Source: Dimorphilus gyrociliatus
Lineage: Eukaryota; Animalia; Annelida
Direction: 5' to 3'
Assembly: GCA_904063045.1 (NCBI GenBank)
Contig: CAJFCJ010000015.1
Location: forward strand, 1,061,034-1,125,033
DNA: 64,000 nt
Shown: one piece after another, positions 1 through 38,701 of the stretch
Numbering within the stretch: the stretch's first letter is position 1
How the letters are laid out: every line of letters starts with the position of its first letter
Translations under genes and position numbers: made by a program
Notes under the pieces: generated by a model
The model's input: only the letters and a program-made list of their open reading frames with translations
Database searches by the model: none
What the model was told of the DNA's origin: nothing

Positions 1-62
1 AAATTTTTTCAACAGTCACTTTGACTATTATTTGCTTTATACATACTTGTTTATCGTTGTAG

Positions 63-786: not shown

Positions 787-1053
787 TCTATTTTTCTATG
801 TTTTCACGAAACTACTGCATCTTTCTGAATTTTTAAATACAATTTATATTCTAAATTGGAAACATTGTTCAATTATATATTTTAATTAAATTTATTCAAT
901 GTATCAACAATTTCTTGATTAAATCAAAAACATAAGGCAATTTATACAGGAATTATATATTTGGAATTAGTTGACAATATTAACGTTAACAGTAGAAATG
1001 GCATGCTATACACCCCAATGTAATTCATGTTGTACATTTATTTCTTTATTTAA

Positions 1054-1059
<6 letters not shown>

Positions 1060-1087
<28 letters not shown>
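1060..1087. repeat. (TA)n microsatellite
   Basis: Directly visible TA run. Confidence 0.95.
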
Positions 1088-1090
<3 letters not shown>

Positions 1091-1126
1091 ATTGTATATA
1101 ATTTTTATGATTATTTAAATAACTTG

Positions 1127-3395: not shown

Positions 3396-3484
3396 TTCTA
3401 AAGTCTATGAACGTATGAAGTGTGACTAAAAAATACTCGATTCAAAAGTAAAAAAACACATTTGCAATGACGGGAAGCGGATGT

Positions 3485-3499
3485 GCATTCCCCGGCAAC
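3485..3499 (+). promoter_or_regulatory. Candidate degenerate RFX X-box just upstream of IFT46
   Basis: gcattccccGGCAAC has a perfect RGYAAC half-site ending 11 nt before the ATG of a ciliary gene; the 5' half is poor. Confidence 0.4.
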
Positions 3500-3510
3500 C
3501 AAATAAACTG

Positions 3511-5741: not shown

Positions 5742-6500
5742 GAGATTAATATACAAAAATACCACAAAGAAAACTCTTTCTATCCAATTAGCTTGTAAAA
5801 GAAAGTTAATACTTTACTATTTAATTATTGTAATGGAATTAAGAAAAGAATATCGTATTTCCTTCTGAATCAATAAATTGCAAAAGAAAAACAAAATATT
5901 TTGTGTATTCATACAACTTTGCAGACATTTATTATGGATTTATTATAAACAATGGATCTTTCTTATCGTTATTATGCTTAGTACAATGCTTCAACATTTT
6001 CAAAATCCAATGGGTATGTCTATTTATGGTGAAGGAAAATAATTAGAAAAAATTGAAATTTCAAATACATAATAGGGAAAATATTTTTTAATAAACGCTT
6101 TAAACTGTTTTAAAACAAACTTATTTTATTGCAAAAGTCCGAAATTGAATATAGCAATTTCCGTCTGTAGTTTAGGTATATCGTACGTGCGAGATTCTCG
6201 TCCTTTTTTCCGAGAGCTGCTTCTGCGGAGTGGCTACAAAGTAAGTTAGACATTATCACATTTATACTTTATGTAATTTGGACTTTGAAGCTAATTTTAG
6301 AATTGTTAATATGCATTTATATAAATACTAAATATCTGGTTGTATAAATTAATGAAAAAAATATTGTTGACGTTGCAAATGCGTTTTGATGATTACCACG
6401 TGTTAGGTTGCCGGCATTTTGTAACATTACACTTTAATTTTTCTGTTTTAACTACAGTTTAATTTGAAAAGAAGTTAAGGAAGCATAAGATAGCGAAAAA

Positions 6501-9475
6501 ATGTCCAAGTTTTTCGCCGCTTCGGACTCGGATAGCGAGACTTCGAGTGATGAAATGATTCAAGACCACCGCCAAATACGAACTCAGGCGTAAGTTAGGA
6601 GTCAAAATTAACAATATGTAGTTCTATAGAACTATCAACAACAGGGTTACGTACCAATGGAGTGACTCTGAAGATGAAGAAAAGAGAGTTGTTCGAAGCA
6701 TGAAAGATAAGAGGTAGAGTTACTTTTATTTTTATATATAATGCACCATTAAATGCTGACTTTTCGACCTATGTTTGGCTTGAAGTCAGTAAGCAACGAC
6801 CGGTGCAAAAGCAATACACTTTTCAAAACTCGTTTAGTAAATACAATTTTACTGAACGAATCCTGTCAAAGTGAACACGTGTAGTTAAGGCATTTTCCGA
6901 AAAATTTCATTTCAAAATGTAATCTTTTTTATATCATTCAGATTCGATGAAATTAAGAATGTCATCAAACATGTGACAAATCATAAAAAAATTAAAGATA
7001 TGGCGAAAGTCTTATCCAGTTTTGAAGATTTGTGCAAGGTTTATGAAAAATCAAGAAGGGTTTTGGAGAAAGAATCAATTTCAACGCCAAGGTTTTTCAT
7101 TAAATGCCTGGCAGAATTGGAAGACTTTATTAACGAGGTTTGGGAAGATAAGGAGGGCAAGAAACTAATGAGCAAAAATAATGCCAAAAGTTTGACAGCT
7201 TTAAGACAAAAATTTCGTAAATTTCTGAAGCAAAGTTTTGAGAATGAAGTCAATAATTATAGAGCAGCACCAGATGGGGAAGAAGTGGAAGAAGAAAGCG
7301 AAGAAGGTGATCAAGAAAAGGTCGACACCGTTGTTCCCAAGGAAGAAGTTCCCAAAGGTAAATAATGGGAATGCAGTCAACAGGATTTCTCAAAGTTATT
7401 CAATTTTTCAGAAATTCCAGAGGAACAGTCCGATTCCGATTCTTGGTTTGAAAGTTCTTCGTCTGAAGAGTCCAGCGATGACGATCCAGAAAATTTGACT
7501 CTTGAATACTTCAGAAAGAATCGTACGGCTGATGGAGATTCAAAGAAGAAAAAAACTGAGAAAAAGAAAAAGCCCAAAGAATTCAAACCGATTCGTGATA
7601 GCGATGAGGAATGGACTGAAGTTACATCGGTGGAACGACCTAAATTATTCCCTAAAGATGCAGAGATCACCATAGAAGCTGTACTAAAAAAAATGGTTGA
7701 ATTTGTTGCAACAAGAGGGAAAAAAGGCACAGACAGATATCAAATGGTAGAAGTATTGGTTGAACTAAGAAAAATTTGTTTTGCACATAATTTAGGAGAT
7801 GGAATTCAAATAAAAATTCTATTCTCCTTGCTGCCTGCTATTTTTGATTACAATCCAAACATGGCCACTTGCATGAAAAGCGAAATGTGGGAACAAACCC
7901 TGATTTGTATGGAAGAACTTATGGAATTACTAGAATGTAATCCCGATATTCATGTTGGTGAGCATATTCCGGAAGATTCAGAATGTCTAGAAGGCGAAGT
8001 TCGCATTCGAGGCTCTATTTTATCACTCGTTGAAAGACTAGATGAAGAATTTACTAAAATGCTACAATCTGTTGATGCTCATAGCACAGACTATGTAGAA
8101 AGATTAAGGTAAGTCATCTATAGTCTTGTTTTAGCTCATTTTCACTAAATTCCCTGTACTTTACAGAGATGAACGAAAAGTTTACGAACTAATTGTTCGT
8201 ACTGAGAAGTATATAGAATCTAAATTCTATACAACATCCGATGAAATATGTAGAATATACCTAAAGAGAATAGAATATATCCACTATAAATTTGATGCCA
8301 AAGTTGTTGACGACCCCAGCAAGTTAACTGAAGAAGACGATCCTGTGAAAATAATGGATAGATTAAGTAAATATATATATACAAAGGATATGACAGATAG
8401 AATTAGAACGAGGGCAATCTTATGCCAGATTTACCATCATGCCATTCATGATAAATGGTTTGAGGCCAGAGATTTAATGTTAATGTCCCATCTACAAGAC
8501 ACAATCGCTCATTCCGATGTTCCTACTCAGATACTATATAATCGTGCAATGGTTCAATTAGGACTTTGTGCGTTTAGGCAAGGACACATTAAAGATGCTC
8601 ATAATTGTTTAGTAGATATGCAAAGTGGAGGTAGATCTAAGGAGCTTTTGGCTCAAGGTTTATTGATGCAAAGAGCCCATGAAAGAACAGCAGAACAAGA
8701 AAAGCTTGAAAAGAGACGCCAAATACCTTACCATCGACACATTAATCTTGAACTGTTGGAGTGCGTCTATCTTATATCTGCAATGCTGTTAGAGGTACCA
8801 TACTTAGCCGCACACGAATTAGACGCAAGAAGGAGAATGATATCTAAAAATTTTCATCACGTTCTAAGACTTTCTGAAAAACAAGCTGTAGTAGGACCTC
8901 CTGAAACTATGAGGGAACACATTGTTGCGGCTTCAAAAGCAATGAAGGTTGGAGACTGGTTGGCATGCAAACAATATTTAATTAATGAAAAGATGCAGCA
9001 AAAAGTCTGGTCTCTCATCCACAAATCGACAGCAGTTAAATCTATGTTAGAAAGAAAAATACAAGAAGAAAGCCTTAGGACTTATCTATTTACATATGCT
9101 CATGTATATAACTCATTATCCCTTGAGTCGGTCTGTTTTCAATTTGAGTTACCAATGTCTGTAGTTCACTCAATAATCTCTAAAATGATCATTAACGAGG
9201 AGCTGATGGCTTCTCTTGATGAGCCAACTAAAACTCTTGTAATGCACAGGACAGAGCCAACACATGTTCAGGCACTATGCTTGCAATTGTCTGAAAAAGT
9301 GTCAAATTTAATTGAAACAAATGAAAAATTAGCGGAAATGAAACATGGAAGCTATTTTTTCAAACAAAATAACTCTAATTCAGGGCAACAACAAAATAGA
9401 CAAAATGAAGATTATCCCAGAAGATCTCAAACACAACAAAGGGGAGATAGGCAAAGAAATGTTAGATTTGCCTAA
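6501..9475 (+). CDS. EIF3C: Eukaryotic translation initiation factor 3 subunit C
   Basis: [13 protein letters not shown] start, [55 protein letters not shown] and a C-terminal PCI domain; spliced across short GT-AG introns. Confidence 0.96.
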
Positions 9476-9835
9476 TTCAATTTCCATAAAATTACGTTCT
9501 TATATTACACATTTTCGTTATTTATTATTTAAATACAGCACACCAGATGCCTGAAATGTATTTGCATACTTTTTTTTAGATTGTTTAATATACATACATT
9601 TTATTTTTTTTTTCAATAAATTATTACCGAAGAAAACATTTATTCAATATAATGACTCGTAAATGTGAGATTATTACATTAACTCTTCCTTGAGTGGACG
9701 AAATTGTAGAATTTTAATGGATGAGAATCGTTTTGCGCTAAACATGGACACCGCGATTTAATGGACACATTATCGGTGTTTTGTTCATGTCACTGGTTTC
9801 TTAACAAAAATTGGGCAATTTGAGGCTTGGGAAAA

Positions 9836-10750
<915 letters not shown>

Positions 10751-11037
10751 TTTGTTTTAATTAACTCAATTGTTTAATTTCTGATTTTAAAAAAGTTATA
10801 GTTTGTTGATAATAAATTAAATAGGAATTTCCCTGTGTACCACACAAATAAAATCTGTTTATCATACAATCTTAAGAAAAATAATAAATAAGAGAGATAT
10901 TTTATCCGATAGATGGGGCTTTTGGGAAAATACTGAGTCTAATTTTCGATAAGTGCATTTAAGTCGTAGAATTGCACAAGTGGATGATATTTTGTATTAT
11001 TATTTAATTCTGAGACGTTTTAAGAAACAACCAAGAT

Positions 11038-11890
11038 ATGAGACCTGATCATCATAAAAAACGAAAAAATTATAGATATAAAAAGGCTCATGGAATAGTA
11101 GATCAGAAAGAAGAAAGCACAGACTCAAAGGAAACCACTAATAACAAGTCAAAGAAGACGAAATCAAATAAAAAGCCAAAGAAACCCGAGAAAAAACCTA
11201 TTGAAAAAGTTCCTGAGAATGACAAAGAAAAAGAGAAGAATGATGACGATCCCAAAGCAGAAGGTGATGAATCTGAAGCTGAAGACTTTAGAAAACGTGA
11301 AATATGCAGTAATTGGTCGAAGTATGAAGAGCCGTCAAGTGAAGAGGTGGAAGATGAAGAAGACGAAGATGATGATTATTCGGATGACGATTTCGATTTA
11401 CAGGCCATGATAGATAAAGGCACTAAAAAATTTCAGGTGGAGGAAAATAAATCATGGGTAAGAGAAATGGAAGAGAAAGACGCTGAACCTCTTAACTTGG
11501 ACGATTTCAATAAAGAATTCTTTGAAGTATTAACACTTTATTGATTGCGAGAGTATTAACGCTCTAACCTACTTTTGTTTTTATTTTCATTAGGAGGAAG
11601 CTGATAGAGAATTCATCGAACGAGCTAAACTAGACTACGAAAGTAAAGAGGAAACAACTATAACCAAAGAAGAACCCGATGAATTGGATATTTTATTAAG
11701 GGCAACCGAATCAACAATAAAAGAAGCCGATAATAATGATATAGACGATTTACTAAATACTTTAGCAATTAAAAGCGAACCTTCAAAATTAACTGCAGAG
11801 CACAAGCATCCAACAAGAAATTTGATAAATACCAACCAACAAACAATGGACGATTTCTTGGATTCATTAGATAAAGTTATTGATTCATAG
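11038..11890 (+). CDS. AVEN: Cell death regulator Aven-like protein
   Basis: Exons 11038-11526 and 11594-11890. MRPDHHKKRK N-terminus, FRKREICSNWSKYEE (compare Aven RKIVSNWDRY) and C-terminal MDDFLDSL (compare LEDWLDSM). Confidence 0.62.
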
Positions 11891-13554
11891 CAATGTAATC
11901 TTTTAAATCATTAAAATTCCAATATTTAATTACAAAACATTGTTTTTATTAGTAAAATTTCAAATTAAAACTATCTCTTAAATATTGAATACGATATCCA
12001 TTTAAATTTTCAACTTAACTGTTAAGTGATTGGCTCTCAAACGAAACTTAGCATGACATACAAAACTGCTAGCTTAAATCAATAGTGTTTAGATGTTAAA
12101 CTGCCTACAAACAATAGATCATTTATGACAGTAAAGCGATGTCCAGAATATAATAGTTATATTTACTTTCGTGTAATATTTTGTTACTTTAAATGGATAG
12201 GACTAATTATTTCGTGTATATATTCAATTTCTTATAATAAAAGAGAAAATCTACTATAATTAAGCATTTATATTCTAATTAAATAAGTGAAAGCTAATTC
12301 AAGTGATTATCTATGTTGTTGTTTATTTGTGTATGTGTGTTCTTTTTTGCAATATGTTGTCTTTTAATGAAATCTTGTATATCCGATTTCCAACTCCTCA
12401 TCAGTGAAGTTTTGATAAGATAGATATAGGTAAAAAGCTACTGGAATATCGTCTATAGGAATTAATGAGAAATACTTTAATATCTTTAGTATCACAGCAA
12501 ATCGTCTACCTCCACTGCGAGGAAGGCGTATGCCTTGATGGAAAAGGCCCAACATAGTTAAATTTTACAGAATACATCGTCATTCGAGCAGAAATCTAGA
12601 AATGGTATAGGCTTATTAAATTGTATACTTACCTCTTCTAAGCCTGATGGATCGAGTAGTATTAGAGTGTCCAAAAATTTAACTGTAAGGAACGTTTTGA
12701 TGATGTGAAAATTTTTATATATAGAAGATTTATCAATGACAAACATGCAAGGAATTCCACAATGAATGAATTTCTTATATTAGACTCTAAATTAAAATAA
12801 ATTCTTTGTTATTTGCTTTTTATAGGAATCTTCCATCACTAGATTCGTTAATTCATATAAAATTCCTATAATGTCATAAGCGAAACAATTGATACACTTT
12901 AATTTGGAGATAAATTGCAGTAGTGCTATCATTTAAATAAGGATATTTATTGTTTGTTCAATCTCTATCTTCTCTATAACTCTCTGGTAGACTTGCAGTT
13001 TGATATATGAAACTATATGATCAAAAGTACAACAACCATTCACTATATATCTTTTTCTTCTACTCTTCCTCATTCTCTTCTTAAGAAAAAGGTATCTTTT
13101 CTTTCTTTATATAGTATTACTATTTATATAAAATACGTAGTTGTTTTTGTAACGTTATTCTTATTATTATCATTTTTTTATATCCTATAATCTCTGTCTT
13201 TTTAAGGAAATGTTTACTATTTTCTAAAACTTTGTTGTTTTTTTTTTAAAAAAACATTTTTCATTTTATTATGATTTGTGTTTAACGATAAGATGGAAAT
13301 AAATATTTCGTTTTCTATTGGACTGTTTGCTTTCAAGTTAAACTATCAATGACAATTTTTAGCGGGCGTTATTCGTAAAAGTAGACAAATAGAGAAAAAA
13401 GAAACGAAGTTGATGAAAAGAAAAAAATAGCCCAAGGCGAACGTCATAGACGGACTTGTTATAAAGAGACGCCGTTCGCATACACACAGTCTTTTCTATT
13501 CGCCGACAGCAGGAAGTTGGCTTCGCTATTTACCAGCGTCTCTTTAGTTATAAG

Positions 13555-22214: not shown

Positions 22215-22625
22215 ATGGTTATTAGAGTTGATGAAATTATGGAAATATTACAGACTGTAGCTAAAGAGCAAAATATGAAAGTAACTATAAAAGAGGGACT
22301 TAAAGGAGCTGTTTTAGCTGGAACTGGAGCTTTTGGGGGAGCAATGCTTGGAGGTCCGCCTGGCATTATTATCGGTAGTGCTTTAGGAGGTGCATTGGGA
22401 TACTTTATGTCTAAAAGTTTTAAACCAGTTTATGAAATAATCAACGATCTACCAGCAAATGAGAGGAAAATATTATACAATAGAACTATGAATATCCTAA
22501 CTAGTTTTGAAGTCAGAGATGTTGCAGGTGTTATTGCACTTGTTCAAGGAAATCCAGAATTACTCAAGCAGCTTGTACAAATGCTTGAACATTATTTGAC
22601 TCAAGATAAAGAATATAAAATATGA
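22215..22625 (+). CDS. C19orf12: C19orf12 / Nazo homolog (glycine-zipper membrane protein)
   Basis: IMEILQTVAKEQNMKVTIKEGLKGAVLAGTGAFGGAMLGGPPGIIIGSALGGALG..MSKSFKPV matches the family. Confidence 0.9.
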   Translation: MVIRVDEIMEILQTVAKEQNMKVTIKEGLKGAVLAGTGAFGGAMLGGPPGIIIGSALGGALGYFMSKSFKPVYEIINDLPANERKILYNRTMNILTSFEVRDVAGVIALVQGNPELLKQLVQMLEHYLTQDKEYKI

Positions 22626-24757
22626 TTCATGGAAAAATTCCATGAACATATTTCAAATACATATTTCAAATTTATGATTAATTGTTTCTTTTTTTTATTT
22701 CACATTCATGTTTTAAAATATTAAAATATGTTATCTTTTTCTTATCATTGTTTTATTATACATTATTCATAATTTTAAAGCTAAAAAGTTAGTGTTATCT
22801 TGGTTTTCAAAAGTATATCTATGCCAAAAAATGTATTAATATATTTAACATTCTCTTCACTGTTTGTTCGTCTACGTCATAGAATAGGCCAACTAAACAA
22901 AAATTTAGCAACTAGATCAAAATACAGGTTTTAAACTATGGCTTCCAGAGAAAGGAAAAAAAACTGAATGCTTCACGTGACTATCACATGACGATCCAAT
23001 GTTACAAGAAGCAAAGAAATTACATTCCATAAATAAACAGTAACGAATGTAAAGTATGAATGCTTAAATTGAAATGGTTGGCTATAACTATCGAAAATAT
23101 TTCGGTAGTGAGGTAATCGTTACACATACAGCGTACAAACTAGCCTTTAAAGAGTACACTGTTTACCATATGACTAAGTAGAAATTTCGTAATGGCTTTA
23201 TAAAATTTATCAAATAATTAAATAATTAGTTGAAATGAGAATTGAACGATAAAATAGATGTATTTATCATATTATAATTATAGAAATATTCTATATTTAC
23301 GAAGTATTATGACAAGCTTCGCGCTTTCAAAAATTCAGGCTATGTTAGATTCTAGAAGATATTTTTTTCTTTTTTTTACATAAAAAACTCAAGTACTTCC
23401 CTACCTCTGCTCTATGTTAGTTTATAAAGTAACTACACAATTAGTTCTGATAAAATTGCCTCCCCTTTTTTCCCAATCTATCTCTTTCTTTCTGTGTATA
23501 TCTTGCATTAATTAATAAAAGGCCTAACCTTACTACTTAATTTGAATGTTATACACATATTACTAATCTACATAGATATATGCTTTTGTAGTAATACGAT
23601 TATGAAGCATATAGATAACGAATGTGACTTTGTTTATCATCTGTGCTTCTTTTTTTTGATGTAATCAACACAATTTCTATGAACGAAATAGTCAGAATTC
23701 AGTCAAGTATTATTTACTAGCGATTTATCAATACAAGAAGTCTTCATTAACCTCTTAACTGTTTCTTTTTTTAAATAGTTTTATTACTTATTTGACATAG
23801 AAGGCCTAGATTCTCACATTTTTTTAGTTTGTTTATTACGTAATGCGTTTTGGAAATTTCATATATCAGCTGTTTTCTCTTTTTTTAACTTCGGTATTTT
23901 TTTTCTTTGATATACCAGTTTTGTCTGTTAGGCTACTATTGCTCTTTAGACTTAACTTTGGATTAACTGTTAATATGTAATCATAGGCTTTTAAAACTAT
24001 TAATATGTTGTGTAATAAATATTAAAGGAGAACAGGAGTAGTAGCATAAGTGAATTAGATATTTATAGATATAGAATATTGTAACTGTAACAAAAATATT
24101 CAAATATTGTTATTTTATACGAATACAATACTAACTTCTTTCTAAAATATAAACTTTACGTGTTTCCTTATATAGAACAAAAGTAATATTGTGTGCTTTG
24201 GCCTATTTTCCCATCTAGTTACATTCATCTTTAAAGATTCTAAAAAGAAAAAAAATTGAAAGAAAAAAGAATCTATTTATACTATAGTTATATAAAAAAA
24301 AGAGAGAAATACCCTGTCCTGATTTTCAACCTCTATGTTAGAAATAGAAAATAGCCAAAATGTTCTTTTTATTGCGTAATAATAAAATATATACATACTA
24401 AATTTATTTGGAATGTTTGAAGGAAAACTTTTGTTATTTTATTACTATTTGAAAATCAGATAAAATTATATTTTATAGCATTCTTAAGTGAATTTATAAG
24501 TTTCTTTTAATTCATTTTAAGTAAGTCAAATACGAGAAGGTTAGATGAAAAAAATTTAGTCTGCTAAGTGTTTATCACGTGATATAAGTCAACAAAAAAG
24601 TGTCCTGACCTCTATACTAGCAGAATATTGTTACCTGCTATAAAATTGAAAAGAACCTTAAATTAAATAAAAATTCTTGTGCTTGCTGATGAATTTTTGG
24701 TGAAAATCACTTGACCCTCACTTTGTAGAATAAAGTTTAACTCTTTATTCTTCAGCC

Positions 24758-27700
24758 ATGCCGAAAGTACTGTCATATACTATTAACGACGGTGTTGCTG
24801 TCGTCACTGTCGATACCCCAAATTCTAAGGTACAAAATGTTTGTTATTTAATATATGAACATACGAGTAACTTTTGATTTAGCAAATCGTTTGTTGTTTT
24901 TGGTTAAATGTGAATTTATTTATGGTTGATTGTTTCTCAGGTTAATACACTTTCCATAGACAACGCAGATGAATTTAAAGAAGTTCTAAATATTTTGAAA
25001 AATAACGATGATGTAAAAGCGACTGTACTTATATCAGGAAAGCCTGATTGCTTTTTTGCAGGAGCAGATATTAAGTAAGTTAATACACTTAATCATTCGA
25101 AACATCTAAGTATTAAAAAAAAAGGTAGTGTCCATATCCTATGTAGTATAATATTAATAAATTAGCTCATTCGACAGAGGTATGTTCATATATACACAGT
25201 ATATGTACAGAATATAAGAAAAAATACTGCTATTATTATGTTAATACTTATCTTTTTGACCATTTTACAAATGAGATCTGATTATCGCTAGCCAGATTGT
25301 GGTAGGCTTGTTTATTTTTGTCTATTTCGATGTTCCAATTGTTATCAGTTCTACTCTACACAGAGGGTGAAGAGTTGCTTTACAGAGATATCTTACTTAA
25401 TAATCAATCATTCAATCAAAGTTCAAATAGAGTATTACCAAAATGCATCAAAGGTTAGGAGTAGTAAAGTTGCAGAACTTAATAAACTGGTAAAAGTTCA
25501 ACGAGAGTAGATGGGGGGCTAAGAGTAGATAATTGGAAATTTAAGAATTGCCGGATAACATGAAATCATCATTTGACTAATAATGTATTATAGTATGCTA
25601 GAATCATGTAAGACTGCTGAAGAAATACAACATTTGTCAAGAATATGTAAAGGAACTTTTAATGAAATAGCTGAAAGTAAAAAACCAATTGTAGCAGCTA
25701 TAATGGGTCAATGCTTAGGTGCCGGACTTGAGGTATATAATATAATCCTTTTGGGTATTCATTTGCACTAATTTGTGATTAATTATCAGACAGCCTTAGC
25801 CTGTCATTATCGAATAGCTGTCAGGGACAAAAAAACTGTTTTAGCTGTACCGGAAGTGATGATTGGTCTCCTGCCTGGAGCTGGTGGAACGCAAAGACTT
25901 TTGCGCTTAGTAAAAGAGAAAATTAAAATTATATACTTTAAATACCTATCTAAAAAAATTTTTACATTCTCTAAAGCTATCTCTTCCTGATGCATTTGAC
26001 ATGATGCTAACGGGAAAGAATATACGCCCTGATAAAGCTAAGACAATCGGTCTAGTACACATGCTTATTGACCCGAAAGGAGCTTCAGATTCAAAAGAAT
26101 CGAAAGAAGCTACAAGAAAACATTTGGAACAAGTTGCAATTGAAACAGCCAAGGGCTTAGTAGACGGTTCAATTCAAGCATTACCAAGGAGAAAGGGATG
26201 GGTAGAAAGTATATATTAATATATTTCTTATCTATTAGATTATAATCTTCTAAATTCTATTTTATTTCAAAATGCAGCCATTACTGAATACATAATGTGG
26301 TTTAATTTGGGTAGATATTTCTTTATGACACAAGCTCGAAATAGGGTAATGAATATGACGCAAGGCCACTATCCTGCACCATTAAGAATATTAGATGTTG
26401 TTGAGGAAACACTAAAGAGTGGTTATGAACGAGGAAACCAGTTAGAAACCAGATATTTTGGAGAATTAGGTGTAACAAAAGAATCAAAAGCTCTTATTGG
26501 TTTGTTTCATGGGCAGACGCACTGCAAAAAGAATCACTATGGTTCCCCTAGTCCTATTAAGTAAAAAAATTAATAAACCTCCAGTTTCATAATTAGTAGG
26601 TCACTAAATAATACAATTTTCTGCTTTGTTAGAAAAGTTGGTATACTGGGAACTAATTCTATTGGTGCTGGTATTGCAGAAATAACCATTTTTAAAGGTT
26701 ATCCTCTTTCACTGTATGATAAATCAAAGGAAAATTTAGAACAAGGTTTAATATATATAAAGAACAATCTCAAGCAACGAGTTTTAAGGAAACAAATAAG
26801 CGATAATGAAAAAGACAAATTGGTATCTAAATTGGAGACTGGCACGGAATTGGAAAGCATATCAAATGTTGATTTTGTTATTGAAGCTTCAACTGAGAAT
26901 TTTGATAAAAAATGCAAACTTTTACTTGAAATTGAGTCTATAGTAAAGCCGTCTTGTGTCATAGCTGTCCAAACATTATTTAATCCCATCGAAAAAGTAG
27001 CAAAAAGTGCAAAGCGACTCGATAAGGTTAGTTTGTTTTTTTTATTGTAGTCGTATCCTTTTCGTTTTTTTAGGTTAATACTTTATTTCCTATTATTTCC
27101 TTATTCAGATAATTGGTATGCACTATTTCTCACCACTGGCAAAGTCACAGCTATTAGAAATTGTTTCATCCAAGAGTGCAACCAAAGAAACCATAGCAAC
27201 TGCAGTGGATTTAGGTTTAAAGCAGGGGAAAATTGTGATTGTTGTTGGCGATGGACCTTGCTTTTATACAACTAGAATTTTATGCATTCTCGTAGATGAA
27301 TTAGTAAGTATATTAAGAGAAGGAATAAAACCAAAACAATTAGAGGATATGACAAAAAAAATAGGTTGGCCTATGGGATTATGCTCGGTTGTTGATGAAT
27401 TTGGCATTGATAATATTTATGAGGCCTCAAAGGTTCTCTGTAGTCATTATGACGAAAATCTTTTGTCAAAAAACCTCATTATCCTAGAACAATTGGTTAA
27501 GAAGGGAATGCTTGGTAAAAAAATTGGCTTAGGCTTGTTTGAATATGATCCTACAAGAAAATTAAGTATAGACAATCCTGCTGCCATTAAAATAATAGAC
27601 GATAATAAAATTTCACCTAAGGAAAGGTGATAAGAGATTTTATTTTTAAGTAAAAAGAAACTATTTGATAATCTATCAATTGTCATTTTTTTTCTATAGT

Positions 27701-28048
27701 TTGACTACTCAAAACATACAATGGCGTTTAGTGTCTAGAATAATTAATGAAGCAGTTTTATGTCTGGAAGAAGGAACTCTAAAATCCCCTTTGGACGGTG
27801 ACATAGGTGCAGTATTTGGTCTAGGCTTTCCACCATTCTTAGGAGGTAATACCGAACTATTATTTAAATAATTCCCTTTCACTAAACTCGTATTTTTGTT
27901 AGGACCCTTCCGTTATTTAGACATACACGGAGCTGAACAATTAGTAAAGAGAATGGAAAACTTTCGAAAAGTTTATGGAGACGCTTTCAAGCCTTGTAAA
28001 TTACTTATTGAACATTCAAAAGATTCAAAAAAACTGTTTCGTTCCTAA
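24758..28048 (+). CDS. HADHA-like: Divergent HADHA (trifunctional enzyme alpha) paralog
   Basis: Ten exons (24758-24829, 24941-25074, 25594-25732, 25790-25909, 25977-26208, 26278-26560, 26633-27026, 27109-27626, 27700-27845, 27903-28048) splice into one frame collinear with the HADHA at 35428: [36 protein letters not shown]. Confidence 0.9.
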
Positions 28049-28632
28049 TTTGAATAATTAATGAATGAAAAGAAATAAAAAACCTCTCCAATCAAAGAAA
28101 ATATAGGAGTTTTTAAAGACCCTATTTATTTTACTCGATATATTAACGTCTAGTTGTTTGATGATAAAATTCAATTTATTCCTTAGAGCTTTCAAATGAT
28201 TGACGTCTCTTTATCCTGGGAGTTGATAGTTTTTGATCTATCTTTAGATGACGATTTTTTTAAAGTAGTTGTCGCACGATTATTTCCAAAGGATATTCAA
28301 CCAACTGGCTTATAGAATCTATGAATTTTATCCTAAATTACACATTTATCTTAATGATAATAAAGCTTTCATAAATATATTTAGTAGTTCTCCACTCAAA
28401 GCAGTTCAATTCCTTATTGTTTAACTGATCAATTGAACTTTTTTCTAAGTTCTTGCAAAGAGAGTATCTTAATCAGGTGTTTAAGTGTTAAAAAAATAAT
28501 ATGGTTGTTATTACTTTTATCGTTAAGACTTATAAATTTTGCAAAAGAATGAACTTGAATTTGAATATATTACTAATAAGGCATTTTTTGATATATCTAT
28601 CATGATTGGAACCAGTAGCTAACTAGATATCC

Positions 28633-29520
28633 TTATTGGTTTGTGATTCGGGCAGTATTGGTTCCAGGAGTCTTAAATCTAGATACCCATTGATGACTTA
28701 ATATTTCTCTAACTGTCATTCGATCTCTATTCTCCTTTTGACAAATGCTGACAATTAAACTTTTCACTTCCTCTCTTACTGCCCTTGTATGAGGAAAATT
28801 CGGTCCTCTAAGGGCCTCTGAAAGGAGAGTTTGATAGGTGGCATCATTGAATGGTAAGGTACCATACATCATTACATATAATATAACACCTAACGCCCAG
28901 ATGTCACTTTGTGTTGGATGATATGGCTTGCACATTAAAATTTCAGGCGGCACATATGCATAACTACCGCAGTAGGTTTCGCTCAAAACTGGCCTACCAT
29001 CTTCTGTCCAAATCTGAGCTCTAGCAAAGCCGAAATCGGCTAATTTTATATCCCAATTACTATCAAGCATAAGATTTTCGCATTTCATATCTCTGTGAGC
29101 AACGCCTCTTGAATGAATATATTGAACTGCACTTGACATTTGATAAAACCATTTCCCTGCCCTCTGCTCGTCAATAACTCTCTTTTTTCGAATCTCCTCT
29201 AGTAGATCTCCATTCGTAATTTTTTCCATGATTAAGTAGACGTGATTCGTTGTCTCAATTGATTGAAAGAATCGCACAATATTAGGATGCTTAAGGAGTC
29301 TAGCGACATGCAATTCACGTGGCATAAAGGTATTAATATATTCTCGAGGAGCCAATTTTTTAGAAACAATCTTAATTGCCACGTCCGTTCCATGGCGTTC
29401 TGAAGACGCACTTAGAACTTCTGCATAAGTGCCTCTACCTAATGTTTGACCTAATCTATAACCGTACATTTCTAGAACACTCCTCTGTTGAGGCTGTTCA
29501 TTAGTCGATGGTGGAACCAT
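28633..29520 (-). CDS. TSSK: Testis-specific serine/threonine kinase (TSSK4-like), intronless
   Basis: GRGTYA, VAIK, FMPREL, IETTNHVYLIME, AGKWFYQ, HRDMKCEN, DFG and SETYCGSYAY.PPE are TSSK-family features. Confidence 0.88.
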   Translation of the reverse strand: MVPPSTNEQPQQRSVLEMYGYRLGQTLGRGTYAEVLSASSERHGTDVAIKIVSKKLAPREYINTFMPRELHVARLLKHPNIVRFFQSIETTNHVYLIMEKITNGDLLEEIRKKRVIDEQRAGKWFYQMSSAVQYIHSRGVAHRDMKCENLMLDSNWDIKLADFGFARAQIWTEDGRPVLSETYCGSYAYVPPEILMCKPYHPTQSDIWALGVILYVMMYGTLPFNDATYQTLLSEALRGPNFPHTRAVREEVKSLIVSICQKENRDRMTVREILSHQWVSRFKTPGTNTARITNQ

Positions 29521-30172
29521 CTTTCACACCCACAAAACACAGCTATAATCTATCCTCAAGGTCAAAATTTTTTGTTGCCCCTCTTTTTCATTTGAAATTT
29601 AAAAGTTTTCCCTGATGTCTTCATTTTAAAGATGTCAGCCTAGACTATCTACGAATGCCATAAATAACCAAAGAACTATTAAAAGAAAGCATAGAAAATT
29701 TAGTAAGGTGTCATACAACATTGTTGATAGACGTTTCAACGAAAACACCATGTTCTTTAGTGGTATAAACTGATTTAATGTACGTTAAATCGTGAAAACT
29801 GTATTATTATATGATATTTATTTAATTTTAATTATTTACATTGATTTCAAAAATATTTGTAGATAATTCGATTGGTAAATATTCCACGATTCGTTCGAAA
29901 TAAATAACCTATTTTGCTTCATCTTCTCTCTGAATAATAATCTTATTTTATTCTTTATATAATTTCGTCTTTTATGACTTTCATTCTCTTCCTTTTCTAA
30001 TTAATTAATGGCTGTTTATATCCTTATAGAACATTTTTTCAGCTTTTATCGCCAGGGAAATGATTTCAAATATCTGGCGCTAAACGGAAATTACACGTGA
30101 CCTCTCACATGACGTGCAAAATGGTACTCGAAGATTGAATTTTTCTCTCTCTAAATAAATTCTAAATAAATT

Positions 30173-31652
30173 ATGGCTACAACTTTGGGAAGGTTTAAAA
30201 ATGCCATGTCTAAGGTAATCGTAAATTTTAGCGGACCAGCAAATGGAGCGGATAGTTACTCAGAAGCCGAGAAGTGAGCATAAATAAGGATTTATCAAAT
30301 ATAGGAAGTATGTTAACTTGCATATAAATTATAACAGATATCTACAATACTCGAGACCAAAGTTCTTAAACTTGACGGAAGATGAGGTAAAGGCTTCAGC
30401 AGACCATTCCCTTCGTCCCATTATCGTACCTAGAGAAACTGGTCAGTCAACATCTAACGTCTGTTTCGGTTACGCTGAGTATGTTAATCACATTTCAGTG
30501 GAAAATGCAATATTAACTCCGTATGTAGGTGCATTAATGCAGGTAAAAGCGACCTAAATGAAGACCAAGCTCACGTTGATAGAATTCTGATATCGCAATT
30601 ACCTGAGGAAGAGGGGAGCGGAGTACGTTTCATATATTTAAAAAATAATCCCCTTCAATTAATTAGTATTATGAACCTAGGATAAGGATGAGCCGATTGA
30701 ATGTGAGTATTTTGGAATTTTTGATGGGCATGCTGGAAGTGGTGCTGCCTTATTAGCTAGAAATTTTCTTCAAGATCATCTGCAAGAGGAATTGTGTAAA
30801 GTGAAGAGTCTCCTCTTCGCAGATAGACCTGCCTGCACTTGTCTTGGACCGACGATTATAAAGCATGATGATTTGATTATTGGTGCCCTCGAGCAAGCAT
30901 ATGCTAGGACGGATGAAAAAATCAAGCAACTGAGAGCCAGCGGTGGATGTACGGCACTAGTCGTTTTAAAATTTAAGAATGTAGTGTATGTTGCCAACGC
31001 GGGTGATTCTAGAGCTGTCCTTATTAGAGGCGACGGTTCCCCGCCAGAAGCTCTTTCATTCGACCATACGCCTGACTCAGAACGCAATAGACTAGAGGAG
31101 GTTGCCGCGCTAAAACCCCATCTATTGCATGGTGTGTTCACGGCAGATTTATGGCAAAAGAGGCCATCAGCGAAAGACGTTGGCTCTTGGTTTCTGTGTA
31201 AACCAGCTGGCAAGAAGGGCTGGATAAAAAAAAAGGTTGAAGAAGAAGACTTGAAAAGTCCTCTTATTTTTGGTAGCGCCAAGAAAGCTAGACTATTAGC
31301 CACAATAGGCGTTACAAGAGGGTTAGGAGATCATTTTCTACAAGTACAATCTACAGATATATATATAAAACCTTTCCTAAGCTCCAAGCCTGAAATTCGA
31401 AAATTAGAATTAGAAAAAGACGACCTTATAGTCATGGCGACTGACGGTCTTTGGGATGTCGTTAGTAACCAAAGTGCCGCGGATAAAATTAGAAACGTTT
31501 TAAAACAACACGAAGAAACTGATGGTCGTCGATATAATGCTCTAGCTTTAGAACTAGTCATGCAGGCTCAAAATGCCGATGTCTCTCCAACTGGACAGCT
31601 ATCGCTGGACGATATAAGCGTCTTTGTAGTTCCCATGGACAGTGCCATTTAA
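30173..31652 (+). CDS. PPM1H: PP2C-family phosphatase PPM1H/PPM1J-like
   Basis: Spliced: YSRPKFL.L..DEV..SADHSLRPIIV..GYAE|CINAGKS..NEDQA..|FGIFDGHAGSGAA..GGCTAL..VANAGDSRA..LLATIGVTRGLGDH..MATDGLWDV..SLDDISVFV. Confidence 0.9.
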
Positions 31653-32199
31653 AATGAAAAAACACAACCAAATTTTAATCTACACTCCTATGTCACTATT
31701 GTTAATCTCAAACAGAAAAAGAAAATTCCGTTATCATTTATCTATTTTTGTACGAAATCATGTAATTAGATGTGAACGCTAAGAAGTAAAGTGGAATAAA
31801 GGTTTCTTTGAGTTCAAATAACTTACTTGAAATTCGTTAACACTAATGTATCTTATACGTCTTCATATAACACAAAAACACTTTCATACTTTCTCGTTTA
31901 CCGGATCCCGCAGTTAATGCTATTTCATGTAGTAGGGATTTTTAATTATGAAAGACTCTTTTCCTGTCTTTGTCTGTTTATAGAAAACAGGATATAAAGT
32001 ATAGATATATAAATATATATATACTGTATCCAGTAGATAATTATATTAATGTATAATATACTGTATATAAAATTTCTTTTATTAGCAATGGAAACATGTT
32101 GCATTGTTTTGTCTAGGGCTTTCGTTTCCTTTTCATTTGAAAAGAAGAGAAAATGAAAACAAAAAATTTAACTAAATGATAGAATGTTCAAATTATCCT

Positions 32200-34897
32200 T
32201 TATGGATATCGCTCGACAAGCATTGCGTGTCCTTGACCTCCAGCTGCACAGGCAGCAATCAAAGCGAATTTTCCATCTTCCTTGATTAAACGATTAGCAG
32301 CTGTCGTCGCCAGACGAACACCTGTCGCTCCGAAGGGATGGCCTAGGGAAAGGGAACCACCCCACAAATTGAATTTTTCCAAAGGTGGTGCTCCTGGTTT
32401 TGCGCTTCTCTTCATGTACTTCTTGGCGAAATGATCACTATCTAGAGCCTTTAAGTTAGATAAGATTTGACCCTGTAAAAAAGCAATTCATTTTTAGTAT
32501 CCTATATGCAGTGTATATAATATTTATATTAAGATAGCATTTAATCATCATTGTAATAAACAGTGATTAATCAACTTTTTATGAAAGAGAGTGCAATTTC
32601 AAAGAATATGTTGACGTACCGCAAAAGCTTCGTGATATTCGAAAACATCAATATCTCCCAAGTTAAGTCCAACCTTTTCCAACAAGCGAGGAGTTGCATA
32701 TGCTGGTCTAAATAAATAAATATTGACAGTGTTATAAAAATGAACTGGAACAATAACCTAATTTTTTTAAAATTCTTACGAAAGAAGCAATTGATCCTTA
32801 GGATCCTGAGACACATAAAGGAAGTCTCTCAAGTAAGCTTTAGGTTTCAATCCCAATTCTTTAGCCTTAGCTTCCGTCATTATAAGACAAGCTGAAGCGC
32901 CGTCCGTCTAGTATTCAATACAATAAAAGTATGTTTTAAAAGGATTATTAATATTTATTACCAAGAAAGATGAATTAGCTGCTGTAATTGTTCCATGTGG
33001 TTTGATAAAAGCCGGTTTTAATTTTGCCATTTGTTCCATAGAGCTTGGTCTAACTCCATTGTCTTCTTTGATCACTTTTTCTTTACCGGGTATTTTAAAA
33101 GAAAGAACATCAGTCAAATAGCCATTATCGATGGCTTTTCTTGCGAGAGTATGGGAACGAAGAGCAAACTCATCCTAAGATGGAACATAACAGAAAAATG
33201 TTTGCTTTTACAAGTGATTTTTAATTGGATAATGGTATTTAATACTTGTTCTTTACGGGTGACGCCGAAAGCTGCGCATAATCTGTCAGCGGAGTGACCC
33301 ATAACCTCATTTGTGGAGAATTCGGCAACAGCCGGTAGCTATAAAAGAAACAAATAGTAGTCTAAATACTTAGCTGATAAAAATATCCTTTTTTGAAAAA
33401 TTAATGAATTTACCTCAGGTGTAAGAGCTTTACCAGAAAGCATCTTCATTGCGATGCCTAATTTATCGCCTGTAGATTTCTTACGGTTCAACTGTTGCCA
33501 CAAATATATATAAATATAACGTATATATATGTACAGTATATATAATTTTATAATAAGCAAAAGAATAATCTTACATCAAACATCAATGATCTCATATAGC
33601 GACTATGACGAATTGGAACATCAGACATAAATTCAACTCCACCAGCAATTGTAATACTAGCTTGACCAGAAGCCAAAAGTCCAATACAGGTAGAAATAGC
33701 CTGATTAGACGAGATACAAGCTTGAGTTACAGTGTGTGATGGGGTAAATTCCGAAAATCCAGCTCCCAAAGCAGCCTTAAAGACAAAATATGATTGTTAT
33801 ACTAGATAATCGATTAATGTGAGTCAAGTATCTTTTACTATTTATTATCGGTCAGTTAAAATTTTACTAAAAGAGATAATTAATTACCTCTCTTGCTATG
33901 TTACTAGTCTTAACTTCTTGAATTACTGTTCCGCAAACGATGTAGTCTACGATATCTGTATAAAATAACACTTATGCTAAATTAATAGAAGTATAAAGTA
34001 TATAGATGACCTTTAGAAATTCCTGTCTTTTTGGCTAATCCTCTGTAAATAAACAATAAAGAGTAAGTAAAAATTGCTCTCTAATTAGTATCAGTTTTTA
34101 GAACTTACTGAAGAGCTAATCTCTGTAAATCGTGGGCCATCATATTTTTGTAATCGGTCCATGCTTGAAGAAATGGAGTTCGAACACCGTCGATTAAGAC
34201 AATATTCGGTATACCGGATCTCTCAAGCGATTTAGGCTTAGCTATGTAAGATAGAAGACAGTGACGTTAGAAATATATTTTGTATTAATTCATTTTTATA
34301 TAATCCACTTACATGCTGATGCTTTCGTTGCAGATGCAGTTGCTGCAGTTCTGATAATATCTATTGAAAAGTTAAAAAGAAGAAGTTAACGGCACTTAAT
34401 CTCTGTATTCTTACATTTTTGAGGGAATGATAACAGTAGATAACCTTCAGATAATATAGGATCTAGTTTATAACCTTAATAGTTAAGAATGAAGATAATT
34501 GGAATTTCACTATATAACTTACGACTACTACTTAATAATGAAAATGAAGAGAAATCTTTTATATCCTTTATAATATTTAAAAAAAACGAGTTTTTTCAAA
34601 GAAAACTAACATTTAACATAATAATTCGTTAATTAAATACTTTTTCCATCATTTTATAAAAATAATTGATGAAATATTTTTTACTTCAGTATTTTAGATT
34701 AAAAATGACTTAATAAAAATTAGATTTAACATCTGAATGGGTTGTTTACTGTCATAATGTCTATTTATGTGAAAAAGTTCCCACAATAACAATACACATA
34801 CAATTAAAAAAATTTTTGGAATGTTAATATATAAAATTTTAAACTTACTTTTACGAATGTTATTTAAAAGTTGAATTTTCGGTCTTGATAATGACAT
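32200..34897 (-). CDS. HADHB: Mitochondrial trifunctional enzyme beta subunit (3-ketoacyl-CoA thiolase)
   Basis: [34 protein letters not shown] (catalytic Cys), [22 protein letters not shown] (His), AACAAGGQG (Cys). The exact N-terminal exons are uncertain; a probable non-coding exon lies near 35093-35200. Confidence 0.93.
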
Positions 34898-35199
34898 GGT
34901 GTTTCTTCAAATTCTTTACCTGTTCATAAATAGAGATCTAAATAAGAGAAAATTGTTGTGGATTTAAGTTGTCCCGGTTTATGACCTTATGAAAATTCAA
35001 TATTTACAACATCGGCTAAGTAAAAGTTAACTCAAATATTGCAATTATATACTAAATAAAATTTCTCTTAGTATGGTCAATCAAACACTTACTTCAAAGT
35101 TCAAAAGTACTTTATATAGCTGATTTTGAAGATGGAATTGGCCAACTGCAAATATTCGTCTGCTACGCGTAGCAACATAAGACACGTGACCATATTTTG

Positions 35200-35427
35200 A
35201 AAATAATACACTCAATGATATTAAAAGGAATTTCTATAAAATTAATAGAATATTAAGTTAAATTTTCACTTTGGCTCTTTTGGTTAAATTTTAAAGAACT
35301 TTTATTTAGCTAGTTTGAATACGCTACTGAACTATTTTTTATTGCGCAGTCGGTTATTTGGTTCCACCTCCACCGGTAAAGTTCATCAAGCAAAAATTAC
35401 GATAAGACATCATTTTATCATAAATCC
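35200..35427. promoter_or_regulatory. Putative shared bidirectional promoter of HADHB and HADHA
   Basis: About 230 bp separate the probable HADHB non-coding exon (donor near 35093) from the HADHA ATG; a CACGTGAC sits at about 35183. Confidence 0.55.
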
Positions 35428-38400
35428 ATGGCGTCTTCTCAACTTTTAGGAGCCTTAAGAACAATAGGCAAAACCAACCATTTGTCTAAATTGGGTAAAC
35501 ATTAATCTTTAACCAAAATATATCTCTTAATTCAATTTGTTATGAAACTATGAATTTTTTTTAGGCTGGCCGAACCTCTACTATTCCAGAGCATTTTCAG
35601 TATCTTCAAGTCAGTCAAAGTACTTGACCTACAGGGTTGAAGATGGTGTAGCTGTTATTACTTTTGATACACCAAATTCAAAGGTATGTTTTAACATTGT
35701 TTACTAGATTTTGATCTTTGAAAGAATTCTATTTTTAGTCAAAAATTCATTGTATATAAACAGTCAGTATGTCTTTTCTCTAGGTTAACACCCTATCATT
35801 TGAAAATTCTGAAGAATTTAAGCAAATTTTGGAAAAATTTAAGAATGACAACACTGCCAAAGCAGGTGTCCTTATATCTGGTAAACCCGATTGTTTCATC
35901 GCCGGAGCCGATATTAAGTGAGTTAACAAAAATTTTTTTGTCTTTCTTACCGCCTATAAATCACACTTACAAGGGAAAGAAAATAAGAGAAAACATTCTT
36001 TTCAAGAGTTCTTTCGCTTTTTTTTTTTAAAAAAAAAAGAAAGTTCTCAAGTCCTTCTAAGGATAAGAAAAAAAATTGGACAAAAATTTTTGAACTTTTT
36101 TTTTCTATTATCTCAAATCAAAAATTGATAAGAATGATAAATTTTTAATGGAGACTTAATAGTAAAATAGAGACTGGTCAAAGTTCTATGAAAGAGAGTT
36201 CAAAGTTTAAGTAAAAAAATGGTAACATTCTAAAAAAGTAATATAGATAATATCACAAAATAAATAAGATCGAATGTTTTTGAAATGACCTTTGGTAAAT
36301 TATATATATATTAGTATATTTATATTTTTTTACTTGGTAAAAATAGATTAGGTATATGGTTAGTGTTCGACTTATTTGACCTTGTTTCGTTTTTCTTAAA
36401 ACTATTAAAAATTTGTAGATTTTATTGATTTACTAATAGATTGATTAAAAAATAGGCCTATATAACTTTGTTTTTCTTTATCTTTATTAATTGTACAACA
36501 TATAATTGCAATGTATTTTATAGTATGCTACAAGCATGCAAAACAACGGAAGATGTTGAAAAAGTCTCTACAGAGAGTAAAGATATGTTGATGGACGTAG
36601 AAAAGAGCAGCAAACCCATTGTCGCCGCTATTATGGGTCAATGTTTAGGAGGAGGTTTAGAGGTTGCCATGTCTTGTCATTACCGAATTGCTGTTAAAGA
36701 TAAGAAAACAACTCTAGCCTTACCTGAAGTTATGTTAGGCATTCTACCAGGTGCTGGTGGAACCCAAAGACTCCAGAAATTGGTATCTCTACCAAATGCA
36801 CTTGATATGATGCTTACCGGAAAGAACATTCGTCCTGACAAAGCAAAGAAGATGGGTTTAGTTAACCAAACTATTGAACCCCTTGGCCCAGGTGTTGACG
36901 AGCCCAAAGTAAATACTAGAAACTACCTTGAACAAGTAGCAATCCAAACTGCCAAAGGCTTGGCTAATGGATCTATCAAAGTTGCTCCCAGAAAGAAGAG
37001 TATGGTCGATAAAGTTACTGAACGTCTTGTTTCTTACGACTTTGGGAGAAACTATGTTCTTAAACAAGCCAGAGATAAAATCATGAAATTAACATTCGGA
37101 AACTATCCTGCTCCTTTAAAAATATTAGAAGTTATTGATGAATCTTTGAAACACGGTTACGATCAAGGTTATAAGGCTGAAACGAAAAAATTTGGTGAAT
37201 TAGGAACTACTAAGGAATCTAACGCTTTAATGGGTTTGTTTCACGGACAAACTCATTGTAAAAAGAACAGATTTGGTACACCTCCTCCCTTAAAGAAGAT
37301 TGGTGTTTTAGGTGCCGGTCTTATGGGTGCTGGTATTGCTCAAGTTACAATGGATAAGGGTTATTCTACAATTTTGAAGGATGTCTCTGAAGCTGGAGTT
37401 GCTAGAGGTCTCAATCAAATTGAATCTAACTTTAATCAAAAAGTTAAGAGAAAGAGAATGACAAGCTTCGAACGTGATCAACTTTTGGGTCAATTGGACA
37501 CTAGCTTGGATTATAGCAGTTTCAAAGATGCCGATATGGTTATTGAAGCCGTTTTCGAGGATTTAGGTATCAAGCACAAAGTTATTAAAGAAGTTGAAGC
37601 TGTTGTACCAGAGAGATGTGTATTCGCAACAAACACATCAGCTCTACCAATCGAACAAATTGCCAAAGGAAGTAGCCGACCAGAAAAAGTAAAATGAAAT
37701 TAATGCTCCTTTTTTTTAAAGATGAACTATAACAATGTTTTTTTTAGGTTATTGGAATGCATTACTTTTCACCTGTAGACAAAATGCAACTTTTGGAAAT
37801 CATTACCCATAAAGGAACATCAAAGGAGACAACATCAGCAGCTGTAGAACTCGGTCTTAAACAAGGAAAAACTGTTATTACTGTGGGTGATGGGCCAGGA
37901 TTCTACACAACCAGAATTTTATCTTTCATGATGGCTGAGTTACTGAGATTATTCCAAGAAGGTGTTAGACCAAAGCAAGTTGACAAACTTAGTAAGAAGT
38001 TCGGTTGGCCAGTTGGCGCTGCTACCTTAGTTGACGAAGTTGGCATTGATGTCGCTAGTCATATTGGTAGATTCATGAAGGACGAATTTGGAGATCGTTA
38101 TACAGATGCCGATGTCTCTTTTATGGATGACATGGTTGACGGTGGTAATTTGGGAAGAAAATCTGGCAAGGGAGTTTATTTATATCAAAAGGGAAGTAAG
38201 GATAAACCAGAAAATCCTGCTGCAATTGAAATAATGGAAAAAACTAAAATAGAGCCAAAGATGGAGTAAGTTACAAAAATTTCCATTTGTTGCCTAAAAA
38301 AAACATCATTTCAACAAAATATCCCATATCCAGGCTTACCGACGAAAATATCCAATGGCGTTTGGCTAGCCGATTTATTAATGAAGCCGTTCTTTGCTTA

Positions 38401-38701
38401 CAAGAAGGAATTTTGGCCTCACCAATTGACGGAGATGTTGGAGCCGTCTTTGGACTTGGTTTCCCTCCATTTTTCGGAGGTTCGTTAACATACTCATTTT
38501 ATCGTCTGAATTATTTATAAAAATAATATATATGTATATTCTAATTTACCAGGACCTTTCCGTTATTTGGACAATCACGGAGCCAAGCAACTAGTTGAAA
38601 GAATGGAAAGATTCCAAGCAGTTTATGGAGATGCATTCAAACCTTGCGACTTACTCTACGATCATGCCAAGGATTCTTCAAAGAGATTCCGTTCAGATTA
38701 G
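35428..38701 (+). CDS. HADHA: Mitochondrial trifunctional enzyme alpha subunit (canonical copy)
   Basis: Seven exons (35428-35494, 35565-35683, 35784-35917, 36524-37688, 37748-38265, 38334-38479, 38553-38701). Leader [55 protein letters not shown]. Confidence 0.96.

Follow-up and report, generated by a model that had tools for sequence, protein, structure and literature searches.

A HADHA paralog in the annelid Dimorphilus gyrociliatus predicted to lack the mitochondrial presequence and probably to act outside mitochondria

HADHA, the trifunctional alpha subunit of beta-oxidation, is treated as a strictly mitochondrial, membrane-bound enzyme that works only together with HADHB. Relocalisation of gene duplicates by gain or loss of a presequence is a general phenomenon, exemplified by GLUD2. 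In the literature searched, we found no description of a leaderless or cytosolic HADHA, nor of a HADHA relocalised by loss of its presequence. Here we analyse a stretch of 64,000 nucleotides from the genome of D. gyrociliatus, a small marine worm (assembly GCA_904063045.1, contig CAJFCJ010000015.1, positions 1,061,034 to 1,125,033 of the forward strand), called the window below and used for all coordinates. It contains a canonical, leader-bearing HADHA gene and a paralog that very probably encodes a leaderless protein. The family is a known one; what is new, judging from the predicted proteins, is a duplicate, conserved in two or more species, that lacks the presequence and part of the dehydrogenase site.

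Gene structure, transcript and N-terminus of the paralog

The paralog (24758-28048, + strand) consists of 10 coding exons with GT-AG borders throughout, which together encode an uninterrupted protein of 727 amino acids. The canonical gene (35428-38701, + strand) has 7 exons and encodes 765 amino acids. The public annotation of the assembly gives the same products, 727 and 765 amino acids long. The two proteins are 56% identical across 726 aligned positions, and the only notable length difference between them is a 38-residue N-terminal extension of the canonical copy. The claim of the initial annotation that the canonical gene encodes a 38-residue leader absent from the paralog therefore holds, the sequence and the alignment of the two models being in agreement. 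The first coding exon of the paralog corresponds to canonical exon 2 minus its first 16 codons, and canonical exon 1 has no counterpart. The exons concerned are as follows.

24473-24829, +: paralog exon 1, minimum extent as given by an RNA contig
24473-24757, +: 5' untranslated part of paralog exon 1, minimum extent, from a colinear RNA contig
24758-24829, +: paralog coding exon 1; start codon 24758-24760, GT donor at 24830, RNA joint 24829/24941
24941-25074, +: paralog exon 2, gene model and RNA contigs
25594-25732, +: paralog exon 3, with the first hydratase glutamate (motif GAGLE)
25790-25909, +: paralog exon 4, with the second hydratase glutamate (motif PEV)
25977-26208, +: paralog exon 5, gene model and RNA contigs
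26278-26560, +: paralog exon 6, gene model and RNA contigs
26633-27026, +: paralog exon 7, NAD-binding part of the dehydrogenase domain (Pfam 3HCDH_N, 1.3e-24)
27109-27626, +: paralog exon 8, end of 3HCDH_N and 3HCDH (Pfam)
27700-27845, +: paralog exon 9, gene model and RNA contigs
27903-28048, +: paralog exon 10, including the stop codon; C-terminus ..KLFRS
35428-35494, +: canonical HADHA exon 1, leader residues 1-22, ending in a phase-1 intron
35565-35683, +: canonical HADHA exon 2, the last 16 residues of the leader followed by the mature start

The transcript was examined in one public run (X1), viewed as assembled contigs. The run record does not give the library type; we consider the run to be complementary DNA (cDNA), because its contigs skip all nine predicted introns of the paralog at GT..AG borders and one loose contig end resembles a SMART cDNA primer. 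The paralog transcript is abundant in these contigs, with 9 of 9 introns spliced out. One contig (record 3) starts at 24473, runs colinearly through the sequence ttcag and the ATG to 24827, and continues into exons 2 and 3. The initial annotation had placed the ATG directly after a splice acceptor, ttcag, and had named RNA junctions into position 24756 as the check to be made. No joint or loose end occurs at 24755/24756 in the contigs, and the ortholog described below reads caaacATG, so that a real acceptor at this site is not supported. As the contig passes through it without a joint, ttcag is part of a 5' untranslated region (UTR) of at least 285 nucleotides and not an exon border; it is a chance motif. 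The 5' features are listed below.

24751-24755, +: acceptor-like ttcag, unspliced in the assembled transcript, absent from the ortholog
24731-24733, +: in-frame TAA stop, nine codons before the ATG at 24758, with no ATG in between
24545 and 24689, +: starts of two tiny upstream open reading frames in the 5' UTR, MKKI-stop and MNFW-stop, read from the sequence
23074-23103, +: candidate leader exon MVGYNYRKYF, inside the 3' UTR of the upstream C19orf12-like gene

The statement that no convincing coding exon lies upstream in frame also stands. It agrees with the in-frame TAA and with a listing of all ATG-initiated frames that end in a phase-1 GT between 22626 and 24755, among which no presequence-like exon with a good donor was found. 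The one candidate put forward earlier, MVGYNYRKYF with a gtagtg donor, is rejected as a leader exon of the paralog: it falls within an unspliced, high-depth contig (record 1 of the same run, 22600-23254) that belongs to the 3' UTR of the neighbouring C19orf12-like gene (open reading frame 22215-22625). Spliced-leader trans-splicing onto ttcag was rejected as well, there being no loose end at this site and trans-splicing not occurring in the species according to its genome paper (PMC7854359).

Between the 3' end of the upstream gene and paralog exon 1 (23319-24439) there are only colinear contigs of low depth (5-9). One loose end, at 24136, looks like the tail of a SMART oligo-dT primer; another, at 23319, looks like that of an Illumina adapter. 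The contigs are either background or a weak, unannotated and possibly antisense transcript.

The predicted protein begins where processed HADHA begins. Its length of 727 residues equals that of the mature human chain in PDB 6dv2. Paralog exon 7 (residues 328-458) aligns to residues 329-457 of the 727-residue human chain 6dv2_G and to 365-493 of the 763-residue, precursor-numbered 5zqz_A; the numbering of the paralog therefore equals that of the mature human protein within one residue. In the N-terminal alignment, 11 residues precede the first conserved strand in both paralog orthologs, as against 49 in the canonical copy. The corresponding distance is 31-59 residues in 7 of 8 leader-bearing eukaryotic representatives (79 in the eighth, P0103) and 10-13 residues in the shortest leaderless proteins of bacterial type. 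The first 38 residues of the paralog contain 3 basic and 6 acidic residues (net charge -3), while the canonical leader contains 4 basic and no acidic ones (net charge +4). Searched alone against solved structures, paralog exon 1 gave only a marginal match (E = 1.6). The earlier proposal that the protein starts at the mature N-terminus and lacks a presequence is thus upheld by RNA contigs, by the public model, by the in-frame upstream stop and by the conservation of the start in a second species.

The paralog and the canonical copy have five introns in common, in both position and phase. A phase-1 intron inside the leader occurs in the canonical copy only, and four introns are found only in the paralog (after residues 115, 155, 232 and 326; 25733-26632), within the region of canonical exon 4. 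The canonical counterpart of this region is one exon of 1165 nucleotides (36524-37688). Either the canonical copy lost these introns or the paralog gained them.

The possibility that the 5' UTR represents a decayed leader was tried and rejected: when the 98 nucleotides upstream of the ATG were compared with the leader part of canonical exon 2, 83% of 2000 shuffles scored as high or higher. Since the similarity does not exceed chance, either of two routes may have led to leader loss: the paralog could have arisen by a 5'-truncated duplication that acquired a new promoter, or the leader could have been lost later.

Conservation, domains and selection

A leaderless ortholog had been proposed as something to look for in related species, and one was found. 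An exhaustive search of representative sequences with paralog exon 8 gave a single paralog-like sequence (P0001), 64% identical, with its open reading frame on one exon. The other matches reached at most 46% identity over most of the exon, and those of 50-59% were confined to the conserved first 70-100 residues. A word search with P0001 revealed no further paralog-like exon frames; as the search for wider relatives covered proteins of 108-343 amino acids from species present in the collections, it is weak evidence of absence elsewhere.

The Logan contigs that carry P0001 come from four runs with accessions of a single series (SRR23372216, SRR23372229, SRR23372231, SRR23372232). In D. gyrociliatus, the two HADHA genes lie on the + strand about 7 kb apart (28048 to 35428) in an AT-rich window (~30% G+C), and are separated by a single-exon kinase gene (-), a PP2C gene (+) and a HADHB-like thiolase gene (-). 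The order is the same on the Logan contig L002 (15.7 kb, genes in 1-13319), namely paralog, kinase, PP2C, thiolase, canonical HADHA. The paralog model on L002 comprises 10 exons and 727 amino acids and starts with MPKIISYNVHDG at the homologous ATG. The bases before this ATG are caaac, with no AG directly before it, and an in-frame TGA occurs 22 codons upstream with no ATG between. The canonical HADHA on L002 keeps its leader almost unchanged. The kinases of the two contigs are 93.6% identical as proteins, and their third codon positions are 64% identical, with a synonymous divergence (dS) of ~1; by this measure the source of L002 is clearly a species distinct from D. gyrociliatus. As two distinct species have the leaderless start in common, it is an old and stable feature rather than an accident of annotation.

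Upstream of the paralog, two short noncoding blocks are conserved between the species:

24371-24380 (L002 ~105-120): ATTGCGTAAT, a bZIP-like site (basic leucine zipper)
24560-24590 (L002 321-350): block with a palindromic E-box, TCACGTGA (24575-24582)

The E-box lies ~180 nucleotides before the paralog ATG in both species, and the start of the RNA contig (24473) falls between the two blocks. Both blocks are probably part of a promoter that the paralog has to itself.

A maximum-likelihood tree of 27 sequences united the two paralog orthologs at 100% support, on a long stem. The pair was sister to the canonical copy (99% support in the Shimodaira-Hasegawa-like approximate likelihood ratio test, SH-aLRT), inside the clade of leader-bearing eukaryotic HADHA representatives; the sampling is sparse, as the library was clustered at 50% identity. 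Bacterial origin of the paralog is rejected, since the gene contains nine spliceosomal introns, is surrounded by animal genes and groups with the HADHA of its host.

Divergence between the two species was estimated for the paralog and the canonical copy, with dN standing for non-synonymous divergence:

Paralog, whole length: 67.7% protein identity, dN 0.22, dS ~1.4, dN/dS ~0.16
Paralog region matching canonical exon 4 (residues 69-348): 77%, dN 0.151, dS 1.28, dN/dS 0.118
Canonical exon 4, first 279 codons: 90%, dN 0.058, dS 1.63, dN/dS 0.036
Paralog NAD-binding exon 7: 45%, dN 0.44, dS 2.36, dN/dS ~0.19

Exon 1 of the paralog has a dN/dS of ~0.12. Non-synonymous change is ~2.6-fold faster in the paralog than in the canonical copy, and the NAD-binding exon 7 (26633-27026; L002 2261-2654) is the fastest-changing part of the gene. 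By these rough dN/dS values, the paralog is under purifying selection in all its domains. That the gene is constrained and functional is also indicated by its intact frame, its correct splicing and the abundance of its transcript.

The domain architecture of the family is retained. Pfam matches on exons 7 and 8 are in line with the order ECH_1, 3HCDH_N, 3HCDH, and the public 727-residue product carries ECH_1, ECH_2, 3HCDH_N and 3HCDH. Both orthologs retain the motifs GAGLE and VPEVMIG, whose glutamates are those that we take, from knowledge of the family, to be the catalytic pair of the hydratase. The dehydrogenase motifs were judged by alignment of exon 7 to solved dehydrogenases. The GXGXXG loop that binds nicotinamide adenine dinucleotide (NAD) is degenerate in both species, reading GTNSIG (GTNSIGAG) in D. 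gyrociliatus and GANNIG in the ortholog, with the second glycine replaced by asparagine. The NTS motif is likewise degenerate, reading QTL (AVQTLFNP) and QTP, respectively. The histidine and glutamate of the dehydrogenase motif GMHYF(S/T)P..LLEI, encoded by exon 8 of the paralog, are kept.

The window contains only one HADHB-like gene, the partner of the canonical copy. This thiolase gene (32200-34266, - strand) and canonical HADHA form a head-to-head pair, as in vertebrates; the paralog has no such pairing. The public thiolase model has 402 amino acids and seems to be 5'-truncated, as the open frame upstream of its called methionine (34266-34108) encodes a conserved N-terminal part of the thiolase.

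A further HADHA-like gene with a leaderless product was observed on an ENA metagenome contig (ERZ25042219 ctg4219l, L006, 3001-5232). It is intronless and encodes 743 amino acids (P0142), with 17 residues before the first strand and the degenerate dehydrogenase motifs GDGELAAG and GVRYLNP, the latter with its histidine replaced. P0142 forms a separate long branch and is therefore an independent leaderless case.

Predicted location of the product and alternative explanations

We favour the view that the paralog is a leaderless and non-mitochondrial derivative of HADHA. The second part of this reading is less certain than the first, although still probable; it rests on the fact that no signal is recognisable, given the N-terminal charge of -3, the mere 11 residues before the first strand and the absence of both types of peroxisomal targeting signal (PTS1 and PTS2). 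Under this scenario, a tandem duplication of the canonical HADHA, before the split of the two related species, would have given rise to the paralog. It would be transcribed from its own promoter and translated from the ATG at 24758. The 727-residue protein would begin where processed HADHA begins, so that no cleavable mitochondrial presequence would be made, and it would stay in the cytosol or at another site outside the matrix. There it may act as an enzyme of the enoyl-coenzyme A (CoA) hydratase type or as a binding protein, rather than as a full trifunctional alpha subunit.

Several considerations weigh against this reading. Some matrix proteins are imported via uncleaved or internal signals. 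Assembled contigs show the dominant form only, so that an upstream exon may exist in an isoform that is rare or confined to certain tissues, and 24473 is the end of a contig and not a mapped cap site. The RNA evidence comes from a single run that is probably also the basis of the public annotation, so these two lines are not independent. Finally, dS is saturated (>1) and the dN/dS values are rough for this reason.

The strongest alternative, to which we assign roughly a one-in-five place in our judgement, is that the protein is leaderless yet mitochondrial: an internal or uncleaved signal would bring it into the organelle, where, as a variant alpha subunit, it would associate at the inner membrane with HADHB or with the canonical alpha subunit. 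The 56% identity to the canonical protein over the whole length, the well-kept C-terminal helical region and purifying selection in all domains are consistent with this, and some beta-oxidation enzymes are known to have matrix signals that are not cleaved. However, such signals are still basic amphipathic N-termini, whereas the N-terminus of the paralog is neutral to acidic (D11, D19, no arginine) and leaves only the short segment before the first strand. Moreover, the canonical copy keeps a classical leader in both species, so that leader loss seems to be stable and peculiar to the paralog. A variant of this idea raised by the initial annotation, mitochondrial import by piggy-backing on HADHB, is unlikely, because import through TOM/TIM23 into the matrix takes unfolded chains; piggy-backing is a peroxisomal and nuclear phenomenon.

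We regard it as improbable that the paralog was redirected to peroxisomes as an L-bifunctional-like hydratase, entering either through a non-canonical signal or with a partner that bears a targeting signal and on which it would piggy-back. Its domain architecture is the same as that of the peroxisomal L-bifunctional enzyme, and peroxisomes import folded oligomers, which makes piggy-backing mechanistically possible there. However, the earlier observation that the C-terminus ..KLFRS is not a PTS1 was confirmed, and a PTS1 of the type (S/A/C)(K/R/H)(L/M) is absent from both orthologs, which end in -LFRS and -TFYK. The last residues are not conserved between them, PTS2 was also looked for in the paralog and not found, and a protein with a degenerate dehydrogenase site would not replace the bifunctional enzyme.

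Still less probable, to our mind, is an upstream coding exon through which an isoform that is minor, or restricted to one stage or sex, would acquire a leader. Assembled contigs drop rare variants, low-depth contigs do extend across 23319-24439, and a junction at ttcag|CC ATG would be in phase 1, like the intron in the canonical leader. These points are countered by the continuity of the transcript across 24755/24756 and by the ortholog, which has no acceptor directly before its ATG. In addition, the phase-1 exons between 22626 and 24755 yield short peptides unlike presequences, those upstream of 23254 lie in the neighbour's transcript, and the only upstream blocks conserved between the two species are short motifs and not coding sequence. 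The remaining explanation, a functionless duplicate in decay, would account for the ~2.6-fold faster non-synonymous change and the one degenerate catalytic site, but is effectively refuted by a 727-residue frame and 10 correctly spliced exons that are intact in two species at dS >1, by a dN/dS of ~0.16 and by the abundant, spliced transcript.

Returning to the non-mitochondrial reading, we tentatively suggest, as a possibility that falls short of a probable one, that dinophilid annelids maintain a conserved cytosolic protein derived from HADHA, which combines an active long-chain enoyl-CoA hydratase with a dehydrogenase-dead NAD-domain scaffold and has a role outside mitochondrial beta-oxidation. 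This role could be, for example, the handling of cytosolic acyl-CoA, or a regulatory or binding one. If so, this would be the first trifunctional-alpha subunit known outside the organelle. A protein that has shed its import signal along with part of its dehydrogenase site, but that purifying selection has maintained in at least two species, offers a natural experiment. It bears on two questions: what the hydratase half and the scaffold of HADHA can do alone, and how duplicates escape an organelle. The locus provides a clean, RNA-supported case of leader loss, with a presumed relocalisation, in a genome otherwise known for conservative compaction.

Comparison with known systems

The closest described protein is HADHA itself, represented by the human structures PDB 5zqz and 6dv2. 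The paralog has the same ECH_1, 3HCDH_N and 3HCDH domains and the length of the mature human chain; it nests in the eukaryotic HADHA clade and has the five intron positions and phases in common with the host's canonical copy. It differs from HADHA in having no presequence, in the NAD loop G-T-N-S-I-G, in the change of NTS to Q-T-L, in its faster evolution and in the absence of a head-to-head HADHB gene.

The bacterial alpha subunits FadJ and FadB resemble the paralog in being leaderless, with 10-13 residues before the first hydratase strand, and in having the same domain order. Peroxisomal EHHADH is, like the paralog, a fusion of hydratase and 3-hydroxyacyl-CoA dehydrogenase, and it works outside mitochondria. 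However, EHHADH has a C-terminal PTS1 and an active dehydrogenase, and the paralog, as predicted from its motifs, has neither. Finally, the locus resembles known relocalised duplicates, in which the N-terminal targeting information of one copy is altered and this copy subsequently evolves at a higher rate.

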